Below are positions 47,149 to 64,000 of a stretch of DNA of 64,000 nucleotides, one piece after another. The position numbers and the translations under genes are program-made. The first letter of the stretch is position 1; every line of letters begins with the position of its first letter. The notes under the pieces were generated by a model. That model was not told the DNA's origin and did no database searches. It saw only the letters and a list, made by a program, of their open reading frames with translations. Where the stretch lies: NCBI GenBank assembly GCA_021613535.1, contig CP075497.1, positions 3,038,001 to 3,102,000 of the forward strand, in the 5' to 3' direction. Source of the stretch: Adineta vaga (Eukaryota; Animalia; Rotifera).

Positions 47149-47677
47149 TTAAGATCGATTATCAAGTCTAGTGGATGAAATCAAACGAGTATTGCGTAGT
47201 AATATTGTCGGAGAAGGATGTAGTTTATTGGAAAATTTCTTTATTTCTTTCCAAATATCTTTATTAAGAAAAATCAAACAGATTTTTTCAATCATTGTTG
47301 CAATTGATGTCGCGACAATTGTAAACATATAGAAAGCATTAGATATTGCATGATTTTTTGTTATGAGTATAATTTGAATGAGACTTGGAATACCAGCAAT
47401 GAGAAAAATGACTAGGAGAATGAAAATATTTCGAATTAAATCAAGATCTCGTTTTGTTAAATGTGCTGAATGTTGAACAGTGACCGATGATTGAATAACT
47501 GGACGATAGATAATACCATAAATGATAATAACAATAAGAAATGGAGTAAAATAAGTCAGAGCAAAGAAGTAACTCGTATGGTGGATATTTACAGCTGGGA
47601 TTAAACATATATGCAATGGACGAAATCGAATGTCTTTAGTAATGAGACTTGGGAGTGAAATTACAAAGGAAATAAAG
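47149..47677 (-). pseudogene. 3' half (TM4-TM7) of a 7TM/GPCR gene split by the 14.4-kb insertion
   Basis: FISFVISLPSL..C..YFTPFLIVIIIYGIIY..KRDLDLIRNIFILLVIFLIAGIP. The ORF track's N-terminus (MGAGCLHLPPC) is transposon TIR sequence. Confidence 0.88.
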
Positions 47678-50619
47678 CAAGGGGGTAAGTGCAGGCATCC
47701 AGCACCCAAAATCAGCGTTAGATGCTGAATAGATGCTGAGATGCTGGCTGGATGCTGAGATGCTGACTGGATGCTGAGATGCTGTTAGGATGCCGAGATA
47801 TTGATTGATTTTTCAAAGAGAAGTGTGGAGTATAATCATGGTATACAACTAGACGGCAGCACCTTGTATCATATTTATTGTTACATTATAAATGACAGCC
47901 GTCACGGGTGACTCGCTTGACTCTCAACTAAAGAATTAACAAAAGGCAATTTACTGGTTATTTTTCCTAAAAAGTCTTTATTCTTGAAATGAATTTTTTT
48001 ATGATTTATGGAATAATTGTGATCAATAGATTTATACTGGTCTACATAATATGGAACGCTAATTCGTTTTATTCTAAAAGTCTTTTTTGAAAGAGTTAGG
48101 AGTGTTTTGAGCTTCTCTGTGCTCAAAAACATTATGATTGTCAATGTACCTTTAGTATCATATAATATCGAGTTCTTTTCATCATTGTCTTCTGAATATT
48201 TGTCGATATCACGATAATATTCAAAAGCATAACTATCTGAATTGTATGGCGTGACAACTGAGATTCAGACATGGATGAGAAAAAGTCAGTAATCATACAA
48301 TGGAGCAAATATAATATTAAATAGACAAGCAAACACACAAATCTTGATGATTTTTTAGGAGAATGACTATCGTTATATCGGTGTATGTTCAAGAGATCGA
48401 AATTGGATGTTTTGAGTGCTTCAATGCGCATTGCAGTTTTATTGATGTAGTTAGAGTAATGAAATATAGTTGAAATCACACCTATCTATTATTTAAAAGA
48501 ATAATATTTTCTCGAAATGATGTGTTGAGAAGTGTTAGTCACAGCTTCCAGATCCAGACCTATTAGACAAATCTAAGTATGGTCGTGTTAACCGTAATAA
48601 TATACACATATCTCTAATCATTCAAGCGATCTGTTCATTGAATCTATGCTTCCTCATAAAGCATTCGTCTTCAATGTCTATCTATCTCTATCTTTTTCTC
48701 TTCACTTTCTCTTCTTCTCCTTATTCTCATAATTAATGTGTTCTTTGAGAAAGAGAAGCGAGGATGAACTGATGTTAAAGACGCGCATATTTGTTGAAGT
48801 AAAGAGACTGAAAGTCATGAACAAAGTTTAACGTTACATTAACCAATATATTCTATTAGGTCCAATTTTTTACAAAGAATTATTTTCGCTTATACGTGGA
48901 TTGAATCATTCGATGGCTTCTCAAGCATCAAGGCTCACCTATTGCATTGATAACAAGTCTATCAAATGAACGTCTAGTCGTTCCGATTCGTAGTTTATTC
49001 TCGAGTCTACGATAAGCTAAATTCAGGTTTTGACACTCGAGAACTAATTCGTACATCGCACATCGATACCCATCTAAACAGCCGGTTGTAGTTTCTCGCA
49101 TTATCTTCAACTTGTGTTTTATTTTGAAAAGTTTATATCATTAGGAGATTGTCTTCCAAAGAGAACCAACTCATTTGTTTTGAATCTATGTGAAACAAAC
49201 GTCGCTAACGAATTCCGGTTCGAATCATATCAGAACTCGACAGCTGAGATTCCGATGAAGTTTCGAATAGTTCCGATCGAAATTATTTGTGAACGTCAGG
49301 ATCCAGTCGGATATGTTTGACCTGAGGACAATTGTCTGAATAATTTCAGACTCGTTTCAATGTTTCATTTTAAAATAACCTTTTGTATAAGCGGTTAGTC
49401 GTTCGTCGGTCTCGCTCTGATCGACCAGTCGTTACCACGTTCTTCTTCAGTATATCGTCCACTAATAGTACAGCTTTGACAAGAGTAGTTGAAGTTCAAC
49501 TATTGAACATAGTTTCGATGTTTCTTCAACAATTTCGTACCTTTCATCAATATGATCTTGGAACAGAAACTGAAAGGAAGCAACGATTTCCCAAATATTT
49601 ACGCATAAAATACACTATACGGCGACTCTTCCAAGTTTTTTGCATTTCTTAAATTGTATCATGACGTTGCTGCATGCAGTGATGCAACCATGATTTTTTC
49701 ATAATAGGCGAACTTGTATTGTGTGAAAAAAAGACTATGGGCAAAATAGGCAAGTTTTTTATTAATGGACCAAAAGCGTTGAAAGAACACAAACATAATG
49801 AAATCAAGCAGTTCTTTTCATTAAAAAAACTGAACATACAAATATCAGGTCTAAGTCGAATGGCCATTCCATTAACCTATTATCAATGTTTTGCATTACA
49901 GTTAAAACGCACGAGGAAGTATACTCCAAATTCCTTACGAAACAAATTGGTGAAGTGGGTATATGTTTGTGTGATACAAGTAGACGAGAAAAAATACAAT
50001 TGGTATCTAACTGATAAATAAATAGACCCATCGAAAAAGTAAAATTTGAATGGGCGAAGCTCAAAATAAAATGGGCAATTGCCCATTTGCCTCCCCTTGG
50101 TTGCGCCACTGGCTGTATAAGAAGGCTTAAACAAAACTTAACCAGTCACCTACATAAACATCTTTTCATCTGATTTTTTATAGCTAGATGCCGAGTTGAA
50201 TATTTTATTTCATTATGCACCTCGGTCTCAAAATACACTATGACCCAAGGGTATCTTCATAGCGTAGTAGTTGAAGATCTGAGGATCCTCATATGATAGT
50301 ATATGAGGACCAAGCGGACCTCTTATGAATAGGTTTGCGACTATTCCATTTTTCAAATAGTGATCCTTGACCAGACATAGACATACAGATATACATACAA
50401 ATCAGTTTCGACTATTAATCGTACTACACCTCTTGCAGTCGAGGGAACAAAATACGATTGATAATCAGTATATCAACAGTACTAAACATGTGTGGAGGTC
50501 TTAAAAATGTGTTAAATGGGTGTCGACATGCTGAGTGGATGCCGAGATGCTGAACGGATGCCGAGATGCCCGACAGGTGCTGAGATGCTGGCAGCATCCG
50601 GTCTGCACTTACCCCCTTG
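47678..50619 (+). mobile_element. Non-autonomous TIR DNA transposon, long copy (2,942 bp; hAT or P superfamily by 8-bp TSD)
   Basis: 17-bp TIR CAAGGGGGTAAGTGCAG ... CTGCACTTACCCCCTTG. Subterminal GGATGC(T/C)GAGATGCTG repeats at 47720-47800 and 50528-50592. No transposase recognised inside. Confidence 0.9.
50040..50111 (-). mobile_element. Solo terminus of a probable hAT-like element nested in the long copy
   Basis: The minus strand begins CAGTGGCGCAACCAAGGGGAGGCAAATGGGCAATTGCCC, a typical hAT-type end with repeated GCCCAT motifs. No partner end found. Confidence 0.35.
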
Positions 50620-51187
50620 GGAAACTTCGGATTTTATCTGAGAGTTATGTGTACTGCAAAAAGTGTATGAGAGATATGAACCATTCTAGAATGTCTACAA
50701 AACACAATTACGACGAGACATTTTTCGATGACTTATTTTTGAATGAATTTTTATGTTTGAATCTATCGGAATAACGGTCATATGCAGCCTCATAAACCTA
50801 TAAGAGATCTATGATAGATCATCAATATCAATAGCTATGGAGATCAGGTTATTCTCTTTCGATAGTCTTTCTGACTAGCTACAAAACCAAGCATTTGCGA
50901 AGCGCCCAAACTACAGGTCATCTGATGGAATATCATGTCAAAAAGGCGTTGCCTGTAACGCTACCAATACAGTGGAACCGACTTTATTTGAAAACAAAAG
51001 ACACAGTTTTAATAGAGAATTATTTTATGTTATTTCTGTAATATTTTTTTCTCTGGCTTTTGTAGAAATTCCCGATGTCGCTATCCATTTCTAGTCGTCA
51101 GTGATTGGCATTTCCAGTTCCATTTTAGTCGTCAGAACAATGTACTATTGTACCTATTTTTTCATTGTAGATTTTTTTGTTATTGAA

Positions 51188-52593
51188 ATGAATTTCGAAA
51201 AGAAACGATCAAATTTATTTGATGAAACTAATGATGATACTGATCTTGTGAAAAAGCCGAAACGTCAACGTTTGAATGATATACCAAATATTGTCAACGA
51301 TATTCAAAGGCTTACAGCGGAAAAAACACATTTAATTATCAAATTATTTATTCAATTTATCAATGGCACTACAAGTTCATTCGTGTTTGATGATTTATTA
51401 AAATCATTTATCGATAATTGTCCGTCATTAAGTCACAAACATATTATCTATGAATTGTATTATGATGAAGAATTTCTATTAAAAAAATTTTATTTCATTA
51501 TTTTGTCTTTGCTAATTCATCAACATTACAACTCTTATTTTGAATAAAAACAATTAGATAATATGAATATTATTAAAATTCTTATATTTAATTGATGAAG
51601 AAAATATCTTTCAAAAATTCGAACAAATCCCTAATGATCAATTGAATATATCATCTTACTTTTCTTTAATGGGTACATTCCTTATGACTATTATATCACA
51701 CAAAACAATTACCACTCAAGATCTTTTTACAATATCAACGGTACTGCAAGATTCAATGATTGATACCAATGTTATGAATATGCCGGTTTTAGAAGAATTC
51801 GTAGAATATTTTCGTAATATAATGAACATTAGTTTTGTCAAAAACATTTATATGGAATTACTCAATGACGAAATTGGATCTGATAATTCTATTGACGAAA
51901 TAACTTTCTCAGGTAAATACAGTTTAAAAAATATTTTTCTTCAAAATAGAAGATATTTTTTATTAAGATATTGTTCCTAAAACAATTGATGAAATTCTCA
52001 TTAAACGTGGTATTGTATTTGCGAACTTGTCGACATGTTTTACTGCTGTGACCTGTTTCAATCGTACGATAATTATCAACAAAAATGCTATTTTATTCAA
52101 CTTGTTAACCAAATCTAAACATTTGCATGACAACGAAATTCTTTTTGGTGGTTTATTGATAACAATACTACAAGAATTTTTTCACGTATTAAGAAGAACT
52201 GTTATTAAAAAAGCATTTAGTCCTTTTTATGAACGAACACCACCTCGAATTATTGCTTCACGAAATGGTATAACTATGTCGGAAGACGGTCTTCAACTAG
52301 AAGACCGTCTATTTGGCATCATATGTGAATCAATCGGTGATCTTGATTGTAAATATTTATTAAATTATGAAAATTGGAAGAACCAGAATCATCAGGATTT
52401 CAAGATAAATTTCAGCAATTCACAAACTCTCGATTTAAACACTAATCAAACACAAAATCGTTGGATTTTACCGAGCAAAAGTGGTAACATTAACTATGAA
52501 AATAACTCAGATCAAACATCTATAAACTCTTCATCACAACGATTAATATTAGCTAATTGTGTTCTTGCCTCTGAAATGTATAGATTTTCTTAA
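51188..52593 (+). pseudogene. Disrupted gene with degenerate zincin-like motif (QEFFH...TP...EDG..LE..LFG)
   Basis: Consecutive ORFs 51188-51547, ~51595-51912 and 51968-52593, with a GT-AG intron at ~51913-51967, an in-frame TAA at 51545 and a frame change shortly after. Motif ITILQEFFHVLRR..ERTPP..EDGLQLEDRLFG. Confidence 0.6.
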
Positions 52594-53647
52594 ATAAATT
52601 AAAAGATGTACCACAAAGAAGTTGTTTTCCTTGTTAATATTTAAGAATGAAATTTATTCGAAATAATTTTCTTTGAAAGTGATAAATGAAAACGTCAGCT
52701 GTTCTTATTACAGTGGACGAACTTCGTCCTTTCCTATTCTATTATGTCTTTGTTATTGTATAGTTTACATGTAAGTATGTCACAGTTGAGTTTAAAATAC
52801 GCGAACATAATAGAGGACAAAAAAGAGAAACAAAAATTAAATATAAATAGATGGATTTGAAAATATTTTTTTCTAAGTACAAACCGAAAGAAAATTCTAT
52901 GTCACGCTCGTCAAAAGATCTATTTTTGATATGAAAGCATTTCTCTCTCTCTATTTTCTTAAAAATTTCAATGTTCTGTACGTCCCGCAAATGAGAAAAG
53001 CTATCTATTTATACAAAAATCTTTCTTTTCTATTTTCTACTAATCCCAATCATATCTTTCGTATTAGACATAATTCCATACACAATTCTCAATTCTATTT
53101 GTTCTCTCTGAAATCAAAATATATATTCAAATACTATTTTTCTATGTTCCAATTTCAACTAAATTCTCTAATCGACTGCTACATATACATCATTTGGAAT
53201 GACAACAAAAAACAGGTAACACTTACTTATATGGATTTTAATCAATCATTTTCGGATAAAAAATATTATGAATGGAATATCTTAAAAGATAAAAATCCAT
53301 TATTAAATGTTTATAAATAATATAGTGGAAATTCTTAAAAACAAATCAATTTCAATATTTTTCTTCACTATCTAGAAATTATTTCTTCTTTTTCTAATGT
53401 TCAATAGGCTAAAAGGACAATGAAATATTTCATTATATTCATCGCGGTCAATATTCTATCTTTTTCATTTGATTCGTTAAAGCTCTACATAAAGAGTAGA
53501 AGAGAAACTCAAATATCATTTATTTAAAATTCATTGAGTTCGTTCAAATATTAACATTGTACTGTTAGATTATTGATCATCATTCTTTTTATCTTTATAG
53601 AGATAGGAATCTTTCTATATCTTTTTTCTTTTCATAGTTAAAATACG

Positions 53648-55515
53648 ATGAAATCAAGATTTGAACATTTACCAAATGAACTTATTTTTCTTATATTTTC
53701 TAATATATCATGGTCAAATATATTAATATGTTTTTGGTCATTAAATAAACGAATTGATCAATTAATATCTTCATTTTTATCAAGTAGAAAGAATGGCCTT
53801 GTGTTTATTGAACCAAGTTTATCACTTGAAAAACGTCAAACAAAATTATTTCCATTAATATCTCAATCATCATTACTTTTATCTTCTATTCGTCGAATTC
53901 ATTTTGATGGAACAAATTCAAATTCATTTGATTTAATTAACGAATGGTTATTTGATAATGAGAAAAAATCTTCTCGTTTTTCAAATCTTCAATCACTTAT
54001 TTTAACTCGTTGTTTATTAAATAAATCTTTATTTGATACATTACCACTTCTTATTAAATATCAACTTGATGAATTAACATTATTACTTGACAAGAATATG
54101 ATTGAATTCTCTTATAATGTAAATGATTTGTCGAAAATAGAATATGAAAAAGGTAAATGAAATCTTTTCTAAAATAAAATCAATATTATCTTTTACAATA
54201 GAAAAATTAATAAAAATATTTGAAGAAATAATTGAAATAATATTTTCCAATGAATGTCGATTAACTTCATTAAAATTTAATTTTGTTTGTGATGGTTATT
54301 CTCTTAAATTTTATCAATGTTTAAAATCACATTTGTTCAAATTTGATTTCAATTTCAAATCAAATATTTTGTCCAAAACTTCGTTATTTACATCTTCATA
54401 TTCGATATACATTTTTTCTTGAAAATGTTATTGATTATGTTCCTTGTCTTGAAGAATTAATTGTCATTTTTCAGCAATCATTAGAAATATTTCCACGATC
54501 ATCATCATATATAAAGACTTTAATAGAAACAAATGGAATTTGGTTTAAGAAAGTAAGAACTAAAGAATTCTCAAACTATGTATTTTTTTGACAGAAAAAA
54601 TGTTGCTTTTTCGATTAGAAATGATTGAAATAATGAAATATTATTTTCAAAATTTCATCTGAACACGTGTACATGAATAATAGAAATGTGTACTATTCTA
54701 TATTCTCGACTCTGTTTTGTATAACAACATGAAAAAACAACAGATGTCATATTATTGTTTCTTAGTATATTGTATTTTAGGTATCAAAATTAAAAAGTTT
54801 TACTTTGAAAAGTTCTATTTGGGACAATTTAGAATTTGCTTATTTCAAATGGTTACTTAATAATTTGAACCATATTGAAACACTTTCTATTCATCTTGAA
54901 AGTCCTGATGATTCGGAAACAGATGAAATTATTTGGAATTCTATAATTGATGCAAATTTTCTAAATATTGTTTACCTGATGAAATCATTCATTTAAAACA
55001 ATTTCATTTTTATATTATTTCACAATATGAATCAATAAAGAAAACAAGTGATGAAATCATCTATTCATTTCAAATTCATCCTGCTTTTCTTAATCATCAA
55101 TGGACAAATATAAAATGTTTATTTGATCCAATTTTATCTAATCATAAGAATTACGTTCTATTTTATAGTCATGTTCCAAAAGCTGTTAATCATTCAAATA
55201 TTCGTTGTATTCGGATTAATATCGATTCAAATCTTCATTCATCTCTTCGACAATTGAATCAATTATTTCCAAATGTTTCTTGCATTAAAGTTAATTTAGG
55301 TAAGAATATATTCATTAAAAAAGATTTTAGAATTGTTTTTTGAGAAAAATGAGTTTATTTTATGTTTTTTTAGAATATTATATGAGTTTTAATATTTCAA
55401 CAATGAATTCATTGATCACGGCATTTGAAATCGACAAATCTCGGTCGTTAAGAAATATTCAATTACATAATGTTACACGACTTGATTTTAGTCCATATTT
55501 CAGTCGTCGATCTGG
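53648..55515 (+). pseudogene. F-box/LRR-like protein, frameshifted, 3' part interrupted
   Basis: F-box start SRFEHLPNELIFLIFSNISW..FWSLNKRIDQLI, followed by degenerate LRRs (NLQSLILTRC, KLRYLHLHI, KLKSFTLKS). Frameshifts within exons near 54340 and 54960. Confidence 0.8.
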
Positions 55516-55679
55516 TAAATTTTTCTTCTATTAGAATTGAAAGTCATAAGAAAAACCAAATATGTCAATAAAGCTATTAAGAAAAGACTTTTGTAGAATA
55601 TGCTTTCTTCTCGTTTTCTCGAAAGTTTCCTTTCGAATCTCAAGAAGAGAACATATAGTAATGGTAATATAGGCAGATT

Positions 55680-56840
55680 CTTGTGTATCGTACCACGATT
55701 TGAAAAAGTTATTTTTTTATTTTTTTTTTCGATAGAAAGCTCTAAACGCTCTAGAAAACGTTGTTCATCGGAAAAAAGAAACCTTTTCCATTCAAATCCT
55801 GTACTTCTAGGTCGTTTTCTGGGAATATGTACATATACGTTTCATATACTAGTTTCCATACCAGTGATGACCTATAAAATATTTGAATCAGCTATTTTTA
55901 TCTTGAAGGTGTAGAGTGAACTTGGAGTCGGGTGTAGTCAAGCGGAGTTAGGTTGAGTCATGCAATCACAGAGTCTGCTGTTTTCCCCTTGGATTTAATT
56001 ACTTGAATAATAGAGGAGAAATCTTGAAAGTACTGAGAGGTCCATTTTTCTGGGACACTCGTTAGTTTAATATTCTTCCCATTCCCAGGAATGGAACGGG
56101 GAACGATGACACCCCTAATCTATCGGTATCTATGAGGGTTCACCAGATTTGTGAATATCCATAAAGATCCGAAAACTTTATGGCAATTATGGTTTGCTTT
56201 TCTCTCTTTTAAATTTCTCAGATAAAAGAGCTAAATCTAATGATAATCGTTCAATTTTTACTATCTTTTCTTTACTTTACGTTATATTTATCCTCCTTAA
56301 TTCTCTCGTTAAGGGGGCCCCCCCTCCTTAGAAAAACCGAATTTTTTGAAAAAAATAGAAATTGAGTTTTTTACATAGAAAGATGCGCCGAAGCTTCCTC
56401 TTTCCGAATATATGTAGATTTTTCAAAAACGATCAAGTTTTCACAGATATATCGGCAAAACTTCGACACTACTCCGACGTTTTCCGTGAAATTTTCATGT
56501 TTTTTCAAAATTTTTGCAATTATGAGAAAACTGTTACCGCATGAGTCTGTGTTGAATAAAATGTCTTTCCATTTATCACTCAGCACTTACTAACACTCAA
56601 GGCCAATGTTATATGTTTATAGGTTATCATTAATACTGAACATTTGAAGTTTAAGTTTATCGTATAGGAATCTATTCGCAAAAACTTGAAAGTTTTTCAA
56701 AACCAGATTATTAAGCTGTTCTGAAATATTTCGTTAATCTGATGTTAATCGATTGTATTGCTGTTCTTTTTATAGAAACTATATGTTCTTGAGACAGTTA
56801 TAAGAAATGAGCAGTAACTTGAAAAGAATTGGAAAAAACG
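55680..56840. mobile_element. Cluster of DNA-transposon terminal fragments
   Basis: GTCTGCTGTTTTCCCCTTG (~55973-55991) resembles the boundary TIR. TTTTCTGGGACACTCGTTA (~56046-56064) is Tc1/mariner-like. GATGACACCCCTA (~56105-56117) is the reverse complement of a TAGGGGTG hAT-like end. TTAA-GGGGGCCCCCCC (56309-56324) is Kolobok-like. Each is a single end. Confidence 0.4.
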
Positions 56841-56963
56841 TACTAGATACGAAAAAGCTCACCAAATGTTTGTAGATTGAAAATAACGTCTGGTTTTTTG
56901 GAAAACGTTTTATCATCAATGTCTGATGGATATAAACATCGGATAATTTGCTTTACTAATGGA

Positions 56964-57079
56964 GGTGAGTGAGTGTGGGTGTGGGTGAGGGTGGGTGTGG
57001 ATGTGTTTCTTCTTCTCTCACACCCACCCACACCCACCCACACCCACCCACACCCACCCACACCCACCCACACCCACCC
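56964..57079. repeat. Head-to-head telomere-like G-rich/C-rich repeat
   Basis: GTGAGTGTGGGTGTGGGTGAGGGTGGGTGTGG, a ~19-nt spacer, then about 6 x (CACCCACCCA). Confidence 0.85.
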
Positions 57080-57151
57080 TTCTTTCAATTTATATGCCTC
57101 ATTTACGAACATTACGTCTTTGGCGATCAGATGATTTTCCATGGACATCGA
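57079..57151 (+). pseudogene. Isolated C-terminal fragment of an F-box/LRR-family gene
   Basis: LLSIYMPHLRTLRLWRSDDFPWTS followed by a GTATGT donor. LRR-like LxxLxL pattern. It abuts the C-rich repeat directly. Confidence 0.5.
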
Positions 57152-57599
57152 GTATGTACAGATTTGTCTTATATAATAATCTCTTAAATAATACAATCGA
57201 AATAAAAATATTTTTCTATTTGAATTTCTTTGAAAACTTGTTTTATCGAACAATTCAATTAAAAAAATGACGTAAAAATGTCTAATAACTATATGGTCAA
57301 ATAGGAAAACTAAAGCGCTGTCTTTGATTTAGTTTCGATGTATAATGATCTTGAACTTTTTATATTTATCTTACAGGGCAAATTAAAATAATTTTCATTT
57401 TTTTCTTCTTTATTTTTTAGCAAAATCTTAAGTTCTTAACTTTCACGATTACAAGATCGAAAATAAGAGTGATTATGATAGTCAAAATGAAGCTGTGGGC
57501 AAGGACAAAAGCTAAACGATCTCCTACATCCTCATCTTCATGATCTGCTCTATTCACATTTCTCACTCTCATATTCACTCTTATGGAATATTTTTTTGT

Positions 57600-58524
57600 A
57601 AGAGAACTTCTAACGTGTTTGTAGTTATCATCAAATTTGATTTTCTTCAATTTTTTCTAATAATTATTTGTTCATTCATATTATTATAAATTTTTTATTT
57701 ATAATTTCATTTTATTATTTTTTTCCAAAGTTCGACCAATTTATCCACCGTCAAGAATAGTTTTTTCACAAACTATGATGCTACGATGGTGTAAATCTCT
57801 TCAAACATCTGATTCAATAAGTAAGGATAAATAGATTTATAAAATAAAATAAAAGTATAAAATATTTCGTTTTGTTTAAGATCAACATGTGTTTGTTTTT
57901 CAACATGACCTAAATGAATTATTTGAACAATTAAATAAATTGGTTTTTCTGGAAATTCTTGGTGAAATTCATGAAGAAAAGATTGAACCTTATCGTTCAA
58001 TGGTACAAAGAAATTTTCCAAATAGTCAATGTCATATTGATATCTCAAGATTTCGTCTTTGGATTTAATTTTATTAAATAATGTTAAATTTTCATTTGTG
58101 AAGAAATATTTCACTTACTTTCCTTCAATAGACAATAAATTTCATTTCAAACTAAAAAATATTTACTCATTGAGGGTGAGGGTGCATGTTATATATATTC
58201 AATTCCATATGATTTCGAGTATTTTCATTTGGATGATTCATTTCAAGGTGACGATGCATTTCACAAAGTTCGACACTTAAATAAGAATGATAAATTTGAT
58301 GTTATTTTTGACATAATATGTTCTAATAAGTCTTTTAATATTGCGAACAAGTCTATAGTTTCGTTCAATGAATAATCACTATGATATAAGTATCCAAATT
58401 TTGTATCTTTATACATTCCATCAATCAGAAAGACAAGACAAGCATGGACAGTATCTGTTGTGATTGTATGTAATGTAACACCTGAAGAACCCATTTTAAC
58501 ATGTACATTCTTGTTCGTCGTGTC
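57600..58524 (-). pseudogene. Degraded ORF with CheD/NTAN1-like (Cys-His deamidase fold) N-terminal motif
   Basis: The exon after the AG acceptor (~58525) reads DTTNKNVHVKMGSSGVTLHTITTDTVHACLVFLIDG..FGYLYHSD. Frameshift near 58280 and stops downstream (57773). Confidence 0.45.
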
Positions 58525-58628
58525 CTAAAAGAAATATAAAAATAATTTTCTCATTGATTAACTCATTCAAATTATTTTTCTTGAATAAATCGTTGAAATT
58601 ACGATCATTTATTAAGTAAGACACATAC

Positions 58629-61385
58629 TGCAGATGTTGTTGTTGTTGAAAGCGGACGCTTTTTTCTTAATTGTTCTTCATCATCTGATAAATTACTTGA
58701 TGATCGATCTATTAATTTTGTTTTTAAATAATTTATCTAAATAATACGAGAAAAATCGATTAAATTAAATCTTAAGAAAAAAAAATCAAATCAAACCTTT
58801 TCATGTTTTTCTTTCGCAACACATGAAGAAATAATTAAAACAACTGGATGTAGAAAAAGATCAGGAAATGATTGAGCACGAAGTTCAAAAACACGTAATT
58901 GTAATTTATCATCGAAATCATTGATACCTAATAACCAATAATTTGTTAAATTATTTTTTTCAGCCTAAATTAGAGAATAATTCATTATTTTCTTTTTCTC
59001 TTTATAAAAAGAAAAACGAACTTTTTCTTTAAGATTTAATATGAATAATGATTCTAATTGATTTTCATTCATATGTCGAAGCATACTGAGATGTCCAGTT
59101 GTTTCTAAATAATAACATTTTCCACTATCAGAAAATCTAAATAGAATTAAAATTTGAAGAAATAATTCGAAAAAACTTCAATAAACAAACCCCATCCAAG
59201 ATAATTTTGTGTTAAATCTTAATGCTAATGGACCAGTTAAAGTATGATCATTTTTAATATCCAATAAAATAGAAAACATTGCTTGTTCATTTTGAAGATC
59301 TAAACAAAAAAACGATTTCTTTTCAATAATCAATTTCTTTAAAAAAAATTTAAAAATACCTCCTGTTATTGAATGATGAATAATCCATAGTTGATTATGA
59401 AAGATAGATATTGAAACAATTGGACCTTGAAGATGAATAGATCGTTGTTGAATACCAGATAAATTCATTATTTGAATACATCTTTGTGTTGTAGCAACAA
59501 CGAGAAAATCTTCACATAAACTAACTAATTCAATTTTGTCATTATTTTCTGTATTCATTGTCCATCGATTCATATTTGAATCTGATGATTGGTATAAAAT
59601 ACAAGATAATTTTCCTGTTTGTGATGAAGCAAGTACAATTGCTAACGAAGATAAATCACCAACTGTATATTGATCTATTTTATTATCAATTGTTATTGAA
59701 TGATGAGACGATGTATCATGAAATGAAATTTTAATTTGTTCGTTATGACAAGTAATCGCACCAATATTATTCCAACGAAGAAAGCGATTTTCAAGATATT
59801 TTGATGTTGATGTTGATTGAAATGCTTCTTGTACTTCAATTAGTTTTGTTTCGGTAGTCATTGATGATTTACGGTCAAACGATTTGGGAATTACATCTTT
59901 ATATTCATGAACTACCTCCTCATCATTGGAAATCGATTGAGAATCTAAAACAATTATTTTTAATATGAAAGAAAAAAGCATTGAATTGAATTACCTTCAT
60001 TATGCGTTGTTATTTTGTCAATTTTTGGTGCAAAATTAAATTTATGTGATGATGTTGATGTTCGTTTTGAAAGATATTCAGATACATTAACATGAGCATA
60101 TTCACCCTCAAATAAATAATTGTTATAAATGAAATAAAGAAAAAGATATGAAAAATTACAGCCGTTGTTACACATGTGAATCGATATGTTTATATTGGAT
60201 TCCATGCTAATGAACAAACAGAATGTTTTGATGAATAACTACAAAGAAAAAAAACAGGTCTTTTCTTCTTCTTTTTCTTTTTCTTACGTTATACAAATAT
60301 CTAATGTTTGACGATTAGGAATAGACAATTGTCCATTAACATAAGATACAATCAATAACATTCCACATGGTGAATAATTTATTAAATGAATTATCTAAAA
60401 TAAACCAAAAGATTTTCGTACAGATCATTTGATTAAAAACAAAACAAAAACTAACTACATCATTTGTATTATTTTGATATGTTTTCTTTCGTGTCCATTT
60501 GTCACATTCATAAAATTCAATTGTATCTTTTACCGGAATTGTCAATAACTATACGAATATTACAAAGAAGTTTTTTTTTCTTCAAAGATAATCATGAATA
60601 AATATTTACTTGATCAATTTTATTCTAGTCGAATTTTATGAGAGAAAATGTCATTCTAAATAATATTGATTACTTAGGAAAATAAAAAGAAATCTTCATT
60701 GAAGAATTTACTCAATATGATAGGATTTTTGTACAAGATTTAATTGTTTAATTAATGTTTGTTTATCAATATTAAATATTCGAATTGAACCATTACAACA
60801 TGATGTTGCGTAAAAACAATAAATTTCTTGTTTTTTTTTCTTCATTTAAAAGATTCTCTTACCAGCCATTGTTTATCTTCATAAACATTCAATGAAAGAA
60901 TTGATGCTTGATGACCATCGAAATATTTCATTGTGTTTGAATCATCATTTAAATTCATCATAACAACTTTAAAATCTCTTGTACCAAGAAATAATAAAGA
61001 ATTTGATAAGCAAAGTGATGAAACTGGTTGAGTAAAATGAACAAGACTTGGCAATGAATTACCATGTGGATATGAACGAACTTCAAGTTCATTTCGATTT
61101 GTTCCAACAAAAATATAAGATTCCTTTGAGAAAAGAATAATATTCAAAAAGCAAATTCTTTTATTTTCAATAACTCACATGAACAGTTAAACAATGACAT
61201 CGTTCAGCGCATCGAATATGTTCAACTTCATCAGTTTTAGTATTAAATATATGAATATTCCCATCTTGTCCACAAGTTAGAAAATGACTGAAAAAAAAAG
61301 AATTTTACATAATAAACCTTCCATCTTTGGTATAACAAACATCCGTAAGACCAGCTACGGAAGGAGTCGATACAATAGATAACAT
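58629..61385 (-). pseudogene. WDHD1: WDHD1/AND-1/CTF4-like copy (WD40 plus SepB propeller), disrupted and C-terminally truncated
   Basis: GLTDVCY..G..FLTCGQDG, LVHFTQPV, LGTRDFKV, GHQASILSL and SepB QEAFQSTST..RFLRWNNIG..ISFHDTSSHH..LSWMGFSDSG..NYWLLG. In-frame TAA at 60190-60192 (AWNPI*), a damaged exon near 60610-60675, and no C-terminal helical/HMG region seen. Confidence 0.82.
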
Positions 61386-61943
61386 TCGAATTGTATAAAG
61401 TAGAACTAAAATTAAAAAGTAATAATAAAATTAGTTGAAATAATTCTTCTATGGTTTGAATAAAGTGGGAAAAAAAGAAAAAAAAAGAAATGTTTCTTAG
61501 TATTCGTATCTATTCGTTTCTCAGTCACGTCTCTTTAGGAAGAAAGAAAGAAGTAGATTCGCGTAAGTACGAACTTCTTTCGTTCTTCTTCTCTATAATC
61601 TTTATAGTAAAGAAACGTAAATATATTTCTGAATGAATGAAAACGTTTTCCTAATATAAATTGTCGTCTGATCGCGATGAATACGATTTGTACTATAGAA
61701 AATTATTGTTGTTTTTTTTTCATATGAAATATTCGTTCATTGTTGATAATCATCAAATTTTTCCTATAACTAATAAAAAATAAAACATTTTAAATTACAA
61801 AATCATTCGATAATTTTTTCTTCTTGACAAAATTAATAATGAATTTTATTCTTAAATTTCACAAGAAAAATAGAAAAAATGTTAAATCTTAGAGTTGAAT
61901 TGGCTATACAAATATTATGTTATAAAAATAAATGCAGAAACTT

Positions 61944-62109
61944 CAAGGGGGTAAGTGCAGGCATCCAGCACCCAAAATCAGGGTTAGATGCTGAATGGAT
62001 GCTGAGATGCTGAACGGATGCCAAGTGGATGCCGAGTGGATACCGAGATGCTGAACGGATGCCAAGATGCCCGACAGGTGCTGAGATCTGGTCTGCACTT
62101 ACCCCCTTG
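61944..62109 (+). mobile_element. MITE-sized copy (166 bp) of the same TIR element
   Basis: Same 17-bp TIRs, same orientation and same GGATGC repeats as 47678-50619. Confidence 0.93.
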
Positions 62110-62512
62110 AAATAAAGATTTGACTGATGATGAAAATGATATGACAATTGTAATTGAATAATCTTCGATGAATGTAGAAAACAATGAAAAGTAAACGAGA
62201 TATTCCTTGAATAGCATATGAATAGGATACCATATTGAGAAATGTATAATTGAGATATGCGATAATTCGACACTACCAATCGGTTAAAATCGTTTCTGTA
62301 TAGAGAAAATAAATATTAATCGTTGTTATAATTAGATAAAGAATTGTAGATAAACATGTATTACATACAAGAAGATTAGCTGGTAGATAGATAATTTTAC
62401 TGAGAGAAATTAAAGTAATAATAAAAATAGAGAGAAATATGGAAATTAATACGGCGATAATAAAAACAGCAAAGACAATTTTCATGTCGACGTAACTATT
62501 CAATCGATCCAT
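62110..62512 (-). pseudogene. 5' half (TM1-TM4) of the split 7TM/GPCR gene
   Basis: MDRLNSYV..ANLLVCNTCLS..TDW*CRIIAYL..YSYAIQGISRLLFIVFY..ISQIFI(S). One in-frame TAG at 62273-62275. Joins the 47669-47149 half in frame. Confidence 0.88.
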
Positions 62513-62940
62513 CTTTCAACGAAGAAAATAATGTCGTATTTTCATTACAATAAAACTGATTAATCACGAACAAAATAATGTTTTGAACATAACTGAATAT
62601 TCTTACGGTAAAATGATATGTTGACTTTATATTAATAGTGTTTTACTTTCATTTCGGATTTAAATCAATATCGGAATGTATTCAATAATGAAAGAGAATG
62701 TGTTTTTCTTTCACACAAATAAACTAAGTCATGATCTACTTGTTATGAACTGTTTTTTCTTACTGTTCAGTATCAAATTAAATATATCGTTCGATCGTGT
62801 TCATGTGAATTTTATCCATTTCTGTTCTACTAAAATCGAAATAGAGATTCGCAATATCTTATTGGTTATTTTCATATCTTTTGTTGTAACTAATTGTTTA
62901 GATTTAGACGTAATGTACTAAACAACATTCATATTCGAAA

Positions 62941-63510
62941 ATGAACATACATAATAACAATACATCATCCAAATCTGAACAATCTATCGAAGACGATCTA
63001 TTCATTGTGAATATGTCCGATGAAGTTACTATTAATATATCCGATGAAGAGGCATCTTTCGCACTTTTTGAACAAAATAAAACGATATATGAACTGGAAG
63101 ATGTTTCTACGGAAGATGACGAACAAAAATCATTACCAAATATACCATTTATAAAATTAGTTAAGGATAAACTTTGTTCAATATGTAATATCGATTTAAA
63201 CTTCTGTCCGCATTCAAATTTAACTCCATCTCAACGAAGCAATCGAAGAAAACGATCACGAAGATATTATTTTCAAGTTACTCGTACAATTTATGAACAA
63301 TTTACTATTACACATATCAAGCGAATATTAATTTGTATGAATATCTATTGGGTGAACATTAATGTAGTTAGAAATACTTTATATATCGGACTGAAAGATG
63401 ATCAGATTCGTCAACAAGTAGAAACTTTATTGCACAAAAAAGTGTTTACCAAAGAACATTATCAACGAATTCAAGCAAAAGATTCTCGTTTAGAAATATT
63501 ACGTCATTAA
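62941..63510 (+). CDS. Intronless hypothetical protein (acidic N-terminus, CxxC-x5-C-x-H, basic C-terminal domain)
   Basis: 189-aa ORF with CSICNIDLNFCPH followed by RSNRRKRSRRYYF. Confidence 0.55.
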   Translation: MNIHNNNTSSKSEQSIEDDLFIVNMSDEVTINISDEEASFALFEQNKTIYELEDVSTEDDEQKSLPNIPFIKLVKDKLCSICNIDLNFCPHSNLTPSQRSNRRKRSRRYYFQVTRTIYEQFTITHIKRILICMNIYWVNINVVRNTLYIGLKDDQIRQQVETLLHKKVFTKEHYQRIQAKDSRLEILRH

Positions 63511-63740
63511 CTGCTTTTTCAGGTTTCTTTGTAACGTTATATGTATAAATAAAATATCGATTCGTTTGTTAGAGACCTCTTTTGGTGTTTGAACTAATAT
63601 ACGAAGGTTTTGACTGGTCAAATTGAAACACTTTGTTCTGACCAATCGGGTGATCGATATAAAAAAAGATGGTTAAAACGACTAGAAGATATAAATTCGA
63701 TTTTAAAAGTAAAAAAAGAACTGCTTGCATAGATTTCAAG

Positions 63741-64000
63741 ATGCCAACAGTATTGTTAATTGATTGTTCGTTGGGGATGGCGGAACGTCTCTCATTTGTA
63801 ATCAAACAAGGAGATAATATGGAAACTACGATGAATATTGAAAAACGTAGTTTAATTGCGAAAATAATCGAATCATTAATGATCAATGATAATACTCCAA
63901 CAAAACTTGAAACGATGGCTGTTGTAAGTATTTTGTCTTTATCTGAATGAAGATAACTCATGTGGTAGTGTACTTAATAGGTATTATTTGCCGGTGAAGA
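63741..64000 (+). CDS. INTS14: Integrator complex subunit 14 (VWA9), 5' end; runs off the window
   Basis: MPTVLLIDCSLGM...KRSL...TKLETMAV followed by a GTAAGT donor at ~63924. Matches the INTS14 N-terminus pattern MPTVVVMDVSLSM...KLEFTAL. Confidence 0.75.

Follow-up and report, generated by a model that had tools for sequence, protein, structure and literature searches.

How did an 11.3-kb block of DNA come to lie inside a receptor gene of the bdelloid rotifer Adineta vaga, between two copies of one transposon whose target-site duplications are interlocked? The stretch that we analyzed (the window) comprises 64,000 nucleotides of chromosome 6 (GenBank contig CP075497.1, positions 3,038,001 to 3,102,000) and carries a transposon-bounded unit of the form AAATAAAG-TE1-GGAAACTT-cargo-AGAAACTT-TE2-AAATAAAG. 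A sequence-only reading of this stretch had described two transposons in the same orientation and in the order B-TE-A...A-TE-B, where B is the outer and A the inner duplication. We find that order to be correct, with identical 17-bp terminal inverted repeats (TIRs), the flanks as described and every coordinate in its place (Table 1). The 17-mer CAAGGGGGTAAGTGCAG occurs at exactly four sites in the window, 47678 (+), 50619 (-), 61944 (+) and 62109 (-), against 0 expected from shuffles. The left and right copies of the outer duplication match at 8/8 positions and those of the inner pair at 7/8, with a single-base difference (G vs. A). The whole inserted unit (TE1, cargo, TE2 and one 8-bp duplication) measures 14,440 bp, of which the cargo (50620–61943) makes up 11,324 bp. 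This cargo is DNA from a foreign locus and lies within the receptor gene on what seems to be one of the two chromosome copies.

Table 1. Features of the inserted unit and of the interrupted receptor gene, in window coordinates.
Feature	Positions	Strand	Remarks
Receptor C-terminal half (TM4-TM7 and tail)	47149..47677	-	ORF; cut off by the insertion; Pfam 7tm_1, E 8e-7
Outer target-site duplication, left (AAATAAAG)	47670..47677	+	
TE1	47678..50619	+	17-bp TIRs, GATGCTG-type subterminal repeats, mosaic interior, without transposase ORF
Inner duplication copy 1 (GGAAACTT)	50620..50627	+	
Body of dispersed-repeat copy	50620..50925	+	~375-nt family; without its first 9 nt, which are at 61927-61935
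Segment U	50926..53382	+	ORFs on the plus strand, none with a Pfam hit; essentially no second copy in the genome
Segment S1a	53383..56312	+	89-93% to C5:15927697-15930875 (minus strand); 79-87% to C2
Scar	56313..57080	.	651-nt repeat fragment and head-to-head telomere-like repeats (56964-57006 G-rich, 57022-57080 C-rich)
Segment S1b	57081..58280	+	95% to C5:15925255-15926449; ends at razor-sharp breakpoint 58280/58281
Segment S2	58821..61780	-	Third, diverged WDHD1/Ctf4-like copy; Mcl1_mid and WDHD1 WD40 domains; 74-75% to C2 and C5 copies
First 17 nt of the same repeat copy	61927..61943	+	AATAAATGC and inner duplication copy 2 AGAAACTT
Inner duplication copy 2 (AGAAACTT)	61936..61943	+	
TE2	61944..62109	+	166-bp internally deleted copy of TE1's element, in TE1 orientation
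Outer target-site duplication, right (AAATAAAG)	62110..62117	+	
Receptor N-terminal half (TM1-TM3)	62118..62512	-	ORF; in-frame TGA at 62273-62275

That the 14.4-kb unit was inserted into a receptor gene, as had been proposed, is borne out by the coding frame. When 47678–62117 is excised and 47677 joined to 62118, one unbroken minus-strand frame is regained (...IIFIISQIF/ISFVISLPSLIT...), that of a single-exon rhodopsin-type receptor. The receptor is contiguous at the insertion codon in the chromosome-3 ohnologue and in the orthologues of A. ricciae and A. steineri, and the synteny LLGL-receptor-IntS14 is conserved at the compared receptor loci. The inserted sequence (47678–62109) has no match in the A. 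steineri receptor locus, the one locus compared this way. The C-terminal half matches an annotated A. vaga protein fragment at 100%, and when the receptor was sought in the other haplotype or an older assembly, protein searches and an exact-product look-up gave only this assembly's annotated fragment. The description of the target as a GPCR gene needs qualifying: the rhodopsin-type assignment (7tm_1) stands, but the in-frame TGA makes at least this allele a pseudogene.

The comparison with read contigs covered the TE2 side and the right half of the cargo. There, a contig corresponding to 61085–61973 was found with zero differences from the window in three laboratory-strain data sets. Cargo contigs had about half the depth of the flank contigs in three data sets (ratios 0.46–0.59), i.e., the depth of the heterozygous indel allele at 63546, and this half depth was stable across samples released 2013–2022. 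These values suggest that the cargo is hemizygous, with the insertion carried by one of the two homologues. The wild isolate run X14, where the receptor flank was without coverage at 85% likeness, is uninformative on the empty site. That the arrangement is an assembly artefact or a chance resemblance we consider hardly credible. Among the contigs listed none bridges TE2 into the right flank (on the TE2 side examined), and the junction contig reaches just 30 nt into TE2, nucleotides that are common to TE1. However, a repeat mis-join cannot make two unlike transposon copies that both have a B flank on one side and an A flank on the other, and still resume at the same codon of the same gene. It would take four separate coincidences (the 8/8 outer match, the restored frame, the 7/8 inner match and a 9-nt match to a repeat family, see below), and the stable half depth fits a chromosomal hemizygous segment.

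The transposon itself has the hallmarks of a hAT element. TIRs with a YARNG-type start and short subterminal repeats are the hAT consensus, and here the 17-bp CAAGGGGGTAAGTGCAG begins in this way and is accompanied by GATGCTG(A/G)-type repeats at both ends. Target-site duplications of 8 bp are seen in the outer pair (8/8), in the inner pair (7/8) and at a mini copy on C5, which has CTTGAACT on both flanks. For the target consensus nTnnnnAn we could compare three sites only, AAATAAAG, GGAAACTT and CTTGAACT, which fit 1, 0 and 1 of its two positions. With 18 TIR hits in the 100 Mb genome when up to 2 mismatches are allowed, the family is very rare. The search for an autonomous hAT or P partner that had been advised gave none: not one of the 82 matches to the hAT transposase domain PF05699 (Dimer_Tnp_hAT) in the A. 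vaga genome adjoins any of the 18 TIR hits, and a transposase ORF is absent from the copy on C4. By its sequence the family looks like a low-copy, non-autonomous, cut-and-paste hAT-type MITE, or possibly a member of the P-type or another 8-bp superfamily.

The two copies that border the cargo are far from identical. TE1 has 2942 bp and TE2 166 bp, and in about 150 alignable nt they differ by 5 substitutions and an 11-nt indel (about 3% at the termini). The indel is a deletion in the right end of TE2, 20 nt from the tip, and identical runs extend over at most 38 nt on the left and about 20–25 nt on the right. Relative to the C4 copy each has one derived substitution, as expected for descent from one element; TE2 is, judging by this alignment, a deletion derivative of a TE1-like copy. 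These differences imply that the event was not recent and that it was not an IS26-style cointegrate of identical copies. Replicative cointegration in the bacterial sense, with the transposon copied during transposition while a circle fuses with the chromosome, is in fact highly improbable, even though the B-TE-A...A-TE-B order is its classical signature. The cointegrates and translocatable units of IS26/Tn3 resemble our locus in their interlocked B-IS-A...A-IS-B pairs, directly repeated elements and circle-equivalent cargo, but they are formed by the replicative or conservative chemistry of IS6/Tn3 and have identical copies, whereas those of A. vaga are unlike and of the MITE-like, cut-and-paste kind. 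A cut-and-paste superfamily is indicated by the 8-bp duplications and by the short, CA-initial TIRs, the family has no linked transposase and, to our knowledge, replicative transposition has not been described for hAT or P elements. The name cointegrate, in the IS26/Tn3 sense in which it had been applied to the locus, is therefore not supported.

Both ends of the cargo belong to a dispersed repeat of ~375 nt, for which there are about 200 candidates in the genome, most of them close to the ends of chromosomes. Copies of this family read AATAAATGY-GGAAACTT-CGGATTTTATCC, and the 9 nt before AGAAACTT at the right cargo end (AATAAATGC) match the 5' end of the family. The 17-mer that starts the repeat (up to 2 mismatches) is found once in the window, exactly against TE2, with 0.13 expected anywhere in the window. 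One copy of the repeat was thus split by an 8-bp duplication and the cargo ends are its two halves; in topology the cargo is therefore a permuted (circle-equivalent) version of a donor segment X-TE-Y. The earlier suggestion that the ends of the cargo once flanked a single transposon insertion is in this way supported independently, by a repeat family that spans both ends, and the inner match is not due to chance. We also considered the truncation of the repeat at 50925 as a junction and rejected it, since the copy is near full length, the family running ~16 nt further in another copy.

The same data bear on two independent insertions at one and the same position of two repeat copies that were separated by 11 kb, with ordinary composite transposition thereafter and a target hot spot behind the inner match. 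The G vs. A difference and the different transposon sizes would then follow naturally. However, the other TIR hits all lie away from the inner-duplication site of the dispersed repeat and have unrelated flanks (AACTATAC, TTTTCCTT, TGATAACC, CTTGAACT...), and so the family has no site specificity. Moreover, the supposed second repeat copy at the right cargo end amounts to 17 nt, which stop exactly at the duplication. Macrotransposons (a nearby Ac/Ds pair, or Drosophila FB) are alike in that two elements of the same family move several kb of host genes with a single outer duplication, but independent insertions give unrelated inner flanks, whereas the inner flanks here are the two halves of one site. 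We regard an origin from two independent insertions as very improbable.

Inside the cargo we found a WDHD1/Ctf4-like copy, an F-box/LRR-like region and ORFs without assigned function. In segment U only a ~220-nt repeat at the start (50925–51147) matches elsewhere (77–79%). The best candidate for the junction at which the permuted cargo was closed is 58280/58281, past which the C5 paralogue and a loose end from the wild isolate run on with different sequence, the loose end continuing like C5. There is also a second scar, at 56313–57080, that stands in place of 1247 nt of the C5 paralogue. Its telomere-like inverted repeat (56964–57080) was rejected as the simplest reading of a circle junction, the C5 paralogue being colinear across it, and resembles the scar of a local break repair or of an insertion. 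The empty donor site or source locus for which a search had been advised was not recovered from the haploid assembly: own-genome searches with the cargo in two halves gave no whole-cargo copy, but partial paralogues on C5 (89–95% for 53383–58280, 4.9 kb) and on C2 and C5 (74–75% for 58821–61780). A second copy of 50926–53382 or of 61781–61943 is absent from the haploid assembly, possibly through later loss.

The mechanism that we consider most likely, and put forward tentatively, is hybrid-end (alternative) transposition of one hAT-like element, as in the composite insertions of maize Ac. A single element would have resided in the dispersed-repeat copy at the donor locus X-TE-Y. After replication, transposase would bring together a left end and a right end from different sister copies (sister-chromatid alternative transposition) and the paired ends would insert into the receptor gene, duplicating AAATAAAG, each end dragging along a full transposon copy and its own flank. 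End joining would then close the flanks, probably at 58280/58281, to give B-TE-A-Y~X-A-TE-B, and later the interior of TE2 would be lost while the copies drifted about 3% apart. In maize, Ac/Ds composite insertions arise when alternative transposition is combined with re-replication (Zhang et al., 2014, eLife, PMC4270019). Each of their borders is a hAT-type end, the two being in direct orientation, the target duplications measure 8 bp and the interiors, of roughly 14–24 kb, consist of donor-flanking DNA with one internal end-joining (NHEJ) or recombination junction (PMC4270019). In our case transposon termini and a target duplication of the length typical of the family are present at both borders, the interior begins and ends in donor-flanking sequence (one dispersed-repeat copy), and the sharp internal breakpoint, which lies in the cargo besides the second scar, is a candidate for the internal junction. 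The maize events differ in involving two elements (Ac and fractured Ac) with reversed ends, in inner flanks that form no duplication pair and in a donor locus that persists, whereas in A. vaga the inner flanks come from one insertion site, the donor is gone and the allele is a natural one of an animal and not a screened mutant.

Several observations count against hybrid-end transposition. Re-replication copies the flanks, so that a later loss must be assumed to account for the missing donor. Because TE1 and TE2 are not identical, an origin from one element needs a later 2.8-kb deletion besides the drift, and ~3% exceeds the mean divergence between A. vaga homologues (1.7%; PMC8494291), although the insertion looks hemizygous. 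Nor did an autonomous element with these TIRs come to light, the closure junction is no more than a candidate, and the cargo bears a second scar. Furthermore, the final structure alone fits the hybrid-end model and a circle intermediate alike. The main rival, unlikely in our view, is an 11.3-kb extrachromosomal circle with one transposon copy, closed by end joining at 58280/58281, that entered by homologous recombination with a transposon already resident in the receptor gene. The same interlocked geometry is expected from it, the lack of a donor copy fits excision of a circle, recombination between two different family members would leave unlike transposon copies, and in bdelloids many double-strand breaks are repaired and homologues recombine with each other (PMC8494291). 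However, no circle has been observed, the identical runs of TE1 and TE2 offer a tiny homology for a crossover and, in so rare a family, it would take a double coincidence for one copy to reside at the target and a second on the circle. The broader idea, that the cargo is a free DNA circle cut by double-strand-break repair from a TE-rich, subtelomere-like region and returned to the gene-dense chromosome core through a single transposon copy, is conceivable but rather doubtful.

Nor is a physical circle, which the sequence-only reading had invoked, required, since the same geometry results from hybrid-end transposition in which the flanks are re-replicated, and also from macrotransposition out of a tandem duplication. 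In the latter, X-TE-Y would be tandemly duplicated (or form a rolling-circle concatemer) and TE-Y~X-TE would move by its outer ends as one long cut-and-paste transposon. A single whole-unit integration of this kind predicts the perfect 8-bp outer duplication and the regained frame, cut-and-paste accounts for the missing donor, and macrotransposons are documented for Ac/Ds (PMC9910405, PMC4270019). It demands, though, a prior tandem duplication that has left no trace, and the right end of TE2 carries its deletion close to the tip (which may be later decay); we hold it to be distinctly unlikely.

Hybrid-end transposition also has a parallel in animals. In 1996 Preston, Sved and Engels and, separately, Gray et al. 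reportedly described P-element hybrid insertion, in which the left end of one sister copy acts with the right end of the other. The likeness extends to the hybrid ends, the animal germ line, the 8-bp duplication and flanking duplications bounded by element copies, but P elements usually insert nearby on the homologue, giving duplications, deletions and recombination, and no compact block is moved elsewhere. Hybrid element insertion of Drosophila P elements is named in passages of PMC3744419 and PMC2775673. As hybrid-end transposition is documented for maize Ac/Ds (PMC4270019), to present this geometry as a new eukaryotic route goes too far.

What the locus offers is a clean natural example, at one locus, of an animal transposon pair that carried an 11-kb block into a gene of another chromosome region, and with both duplication pairs still readable it is possible to reconstruct the topology of the event. 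Most structures of this kind known so far come from screened mutants of maize and Drosophila. Bdelloid rotifers undergo heavy DNA breakage and repair and have no conventional sex, and in them events of transposon pairs could be one source of hemizygous segments and gene relocations. If the circle reading were true, transposon ends would offer bdelloids a way to take extrachromosomal circles back into the genome and to shuffle blocks of genes from one chromosome to another.

The order at the locus is AAATAAAG, TE1, GGAAACTT, the interior of the cargo (the ~11.3-kb segment between the two elements), AGAAACTT, TE2 and AAATAAAG. The 17-mer CAAGGGGGTAAGTGCAG was found four times in the window, always at an end of TE1 or TE2, while chance would predict none; with the flanks also reading as claimed, the structure and coordinates proposed by the sequence-only reading are real. 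The genome searched was a haploid assembly of 100.8 Mb in six contigs, and the window belongs to its chromosome 6. A. vaga is diploid and paleotetraploid, its chromosomes 1, 2, and 3 being homoeologous to 4, 5, and 6, with a mean heterozygosity of 1.7% (PMC8494291).

The outer pair of target-site duplications shows that a receptor gene did receive an insertion. When 47678–62117 was removed in silico, the minus-strand frame was unbroken over the joint; the C-terminal half of the receptor matched 7tm_1, and an annotated Adineta vaga protein matched the receptor fragment at 100% identity. In the ohnologue on chromosome 3, as in the A. ricciae and A. steineri orthologues, the gene runs without a break through exactly the interrupted codon, and the terminal inverted repeat (TIR) of the elements is not present in any of the three. 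The LLGL-receptor-IntS14 synteny is common to A. vaga and A. steineri, and the sequence of 47678–62109 was not found at the A. steineri receptor locus. The N-terminal half in A. vaga has an in-frame TGA (62273–62275, minus strand) at the place where A. ricciae reads Ser-Trp-Cys, so that this allele is a pseudogene even apart from the insertion. A tandem duplication of the IntS14-receptor gene pair is present in A. steineri (CAJNOE010000460.1, 7381–13700).

The inner pair connects the two ends of the cargo. The leading 306 nt of the cargo come from a dispersed repeat; it has about 200 candidate copies, most of them no further than about 1 Mb from a chromosome end. More than 25 copies place the start of the family 9 nt upstream of GGAAACTT, and six copies compared with their flanks read (T)AAATAAATGY GGAAACTT CGGATTTTATCC. 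The right end of the cargo is AAAATAAATGC AGAAACTT, abutting TE2, and when it is placed before the left end the normal 5′ end of the repeat family is restored. With up to two mismatches allowed, this 17-mer has a single occurrence in the window, the one next to TE2 (0.13 expected anywhere on both strands, 128 kb), and by this measure the inner match is not due to chance. Given the restored 5′ end and the unique 17-mer, the element struck one repeat copy and duplicated an 8-bp site, and the whole 11.3 kb of cargo now separates the two halves, one at each of its ends. The earlier proposal of once-contiguous cargo ends is thus borne out, since together they rebuild one repeat copy. A target preference of the elements could also be invoked for matching inner flanks, and is unlikely because the flanks of other family members are unrelated.

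Features of the insertion, with their similarity to C2 and C5 (other chromosomes of the same assembly)
Feature	Position	Orientation	Description
TE1	47678–50619	same as TE2	2942 bp
Dispersed repeat	50620–50925		
ORFs	50926–53382		no Pfam matches; no other genomic copy
C5/C2-like segment	53383–58280		89–95% to C5:15925255–15930875; 79–87% to C2
Scar within the C5/C2-like segment	56313–57080		651-nt repeat fragment and head-to-head telomere-like repeats, replacing 1247 nt of the C5 version
WDHD1/Ctf4-like copy	58821–61780	minus	third in genome; Mcl1_mid and WDHD1 WD40 matches; 74–75% to C2 and C5 copies
TE2	61944–62109	same as TE1	166 bp

The cargo itself is a patchwork of segments. The telomere-like runs of the scar, which follow the 651-nt repeat fragment, are a degenerate G-rich one (56964–57006) and, 15 nt further, a C-rich CACCCA run (57022–57080) that adjoins a broken exon (57080/57081). 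The whole resembles a break that telomere addition had healed before the ends were rejoined, or else the scar of a telomere-associated retroelement. The WDHD1/Ctf4-like copy is equidistant from those of C2 and C5 and its ORFs are fragmented; on C2 this gene adjoins the paralogue of the C5/C2-like segment, in opposite orientation. At 58280/58281 an identity of 80/80 to C5 ends abruptly and the window continues with unrelated sequence, while past the equivalent point C5 and a wild isolate both read CAATGA(T/C)TGAGAG... For the junction closing the permuted segment this position is the best candidate, and it is kept as a candidate because the donor locus was not found in the haploid assembly.

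For the laboratory strain, Logan contigs of three data sets (releases of 2013, 2015, and 2022) were compared over 58001–64000; coming from one clonal strain, they are independent of the assembly, not of one another. All three contained an 889-nt contig equal to 61085–61973, with zero differences from the window, that passes the junction between cargo and TE2 by 30 nt (k-1), the bases beyond being common to TE1. Among the contigs listed over this interval none bridged TE2 to the right flank. Cargo contigs were long and variant-free, and their depth was about half that of the right-flank contigs (16–21 vs. 27–33 in data set X2, 63–90 vs. 155–173 in X3, and 57–72 vs. 105–112 in X9). A single allele of a heterozygous indel (7 nt, at 63546) had the same depth as the cargo contigs. 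This is suggestive of hemizygosity of at least 58251–61973, and falls short of proof because the depth of a contig cannot be equated with copy number.

TE1 and TE2 differ by two mismatches over the left 69 nt, and by three mismatches and an 11-nt deletion in TE2 over the right ~80 nt. Relative to a family copy on C4 each carries one derived change, and TE2 resembles a TE1-like copy that has undergone deletion and decay. The family is very rare (18 TIR matches with up to two mismatches in the whole genome vs. 0 for a control pattern). A 105-bp copy on C5 is flanked by the perfect 8-bp duplication CTTGAACT. Inspection of ORFs detected no transposase coding in any family copy, and of the 82 hAT dimerisation-domain matches in the genome none adjoins a TIR match. 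Because of the 8-bp duplication and the CA-initial TIR we refer to the element as hAT-like, not as a proven hAT. The interior of TE1 (47800–50520) is a mosaic of pieces with 67–85% identity to dozens of loci spread over all chromosomes, and looks more like repeat fragments that were captured or nested than like what remains of a transposase gene. At another locus (C4:8094017–8102082) a left end of the family (C4:8096017) lies 4 kb from a reversed 100-bp mini copy (C4:8099983–8100082), and the element flanks AACTATAC, TTTTCCTT, and TGATAACC do not match one another; it may be another rearranged site, or its duplications may be old and decayed.

The geometry B-TE-A-Y~X-A-TE-B, where A and B are the inner and outer duplications, X and Y the donor flanks and ~ their closure, implies that the two flanks of one insertion became joined together. 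Among three routes to this outcome, we rank first hybrid-end (sister-chromatid) alternative transposition. After replication of the donor, one sister copy would contribute its left end and the other its right end for insertion into a new target, each end carrying along a TE copy and its own flank, and the flanks would be joined afterwards. In animals the counterpart of this process is P-element hybrid element insertion. The ranking has three reasons: a very rare element would be needed in a single copy only; TE2 looks like a deletion derivative of a TE1-like copy, with one derived change in TE1 and one in TE2; and for the second route, a circle X-TE-Y recombining with a resident TE, as the sequence-only reading had it, the crossover would have had perfect identity of 38 nt or less. 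The third route is macrotransposition from a tandem duplication or concatemer. Against the hybrid-end route, the donor is gone, and the divergence between TE1 and TE2 (roughly 3%) exceeds the mean allelic one even though the insertion seems to be hemizygous; on structure alone, no choice among the three can be made. In the bacterial sense, a replicative cointegrate is improbable, since the two TE copies differ from each other and the element is of a cut-and-paste type, and that label was overstated.

The claim of a new eukaryotic route also went too far, because the same architecture is documented in maize, where Ac/Ds alternative transposition generates “composite insertions” (14–24 kb) that have TE termini and an 8-bp duplication and contain an NHEJ junction in their interior (PMC4270019), and is implied by the P-element work, in which hybrid element insertion is named (PMC3744419). 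With the A. vaga locus, a bdelloid rotifer provides a natural example that is well preserved.
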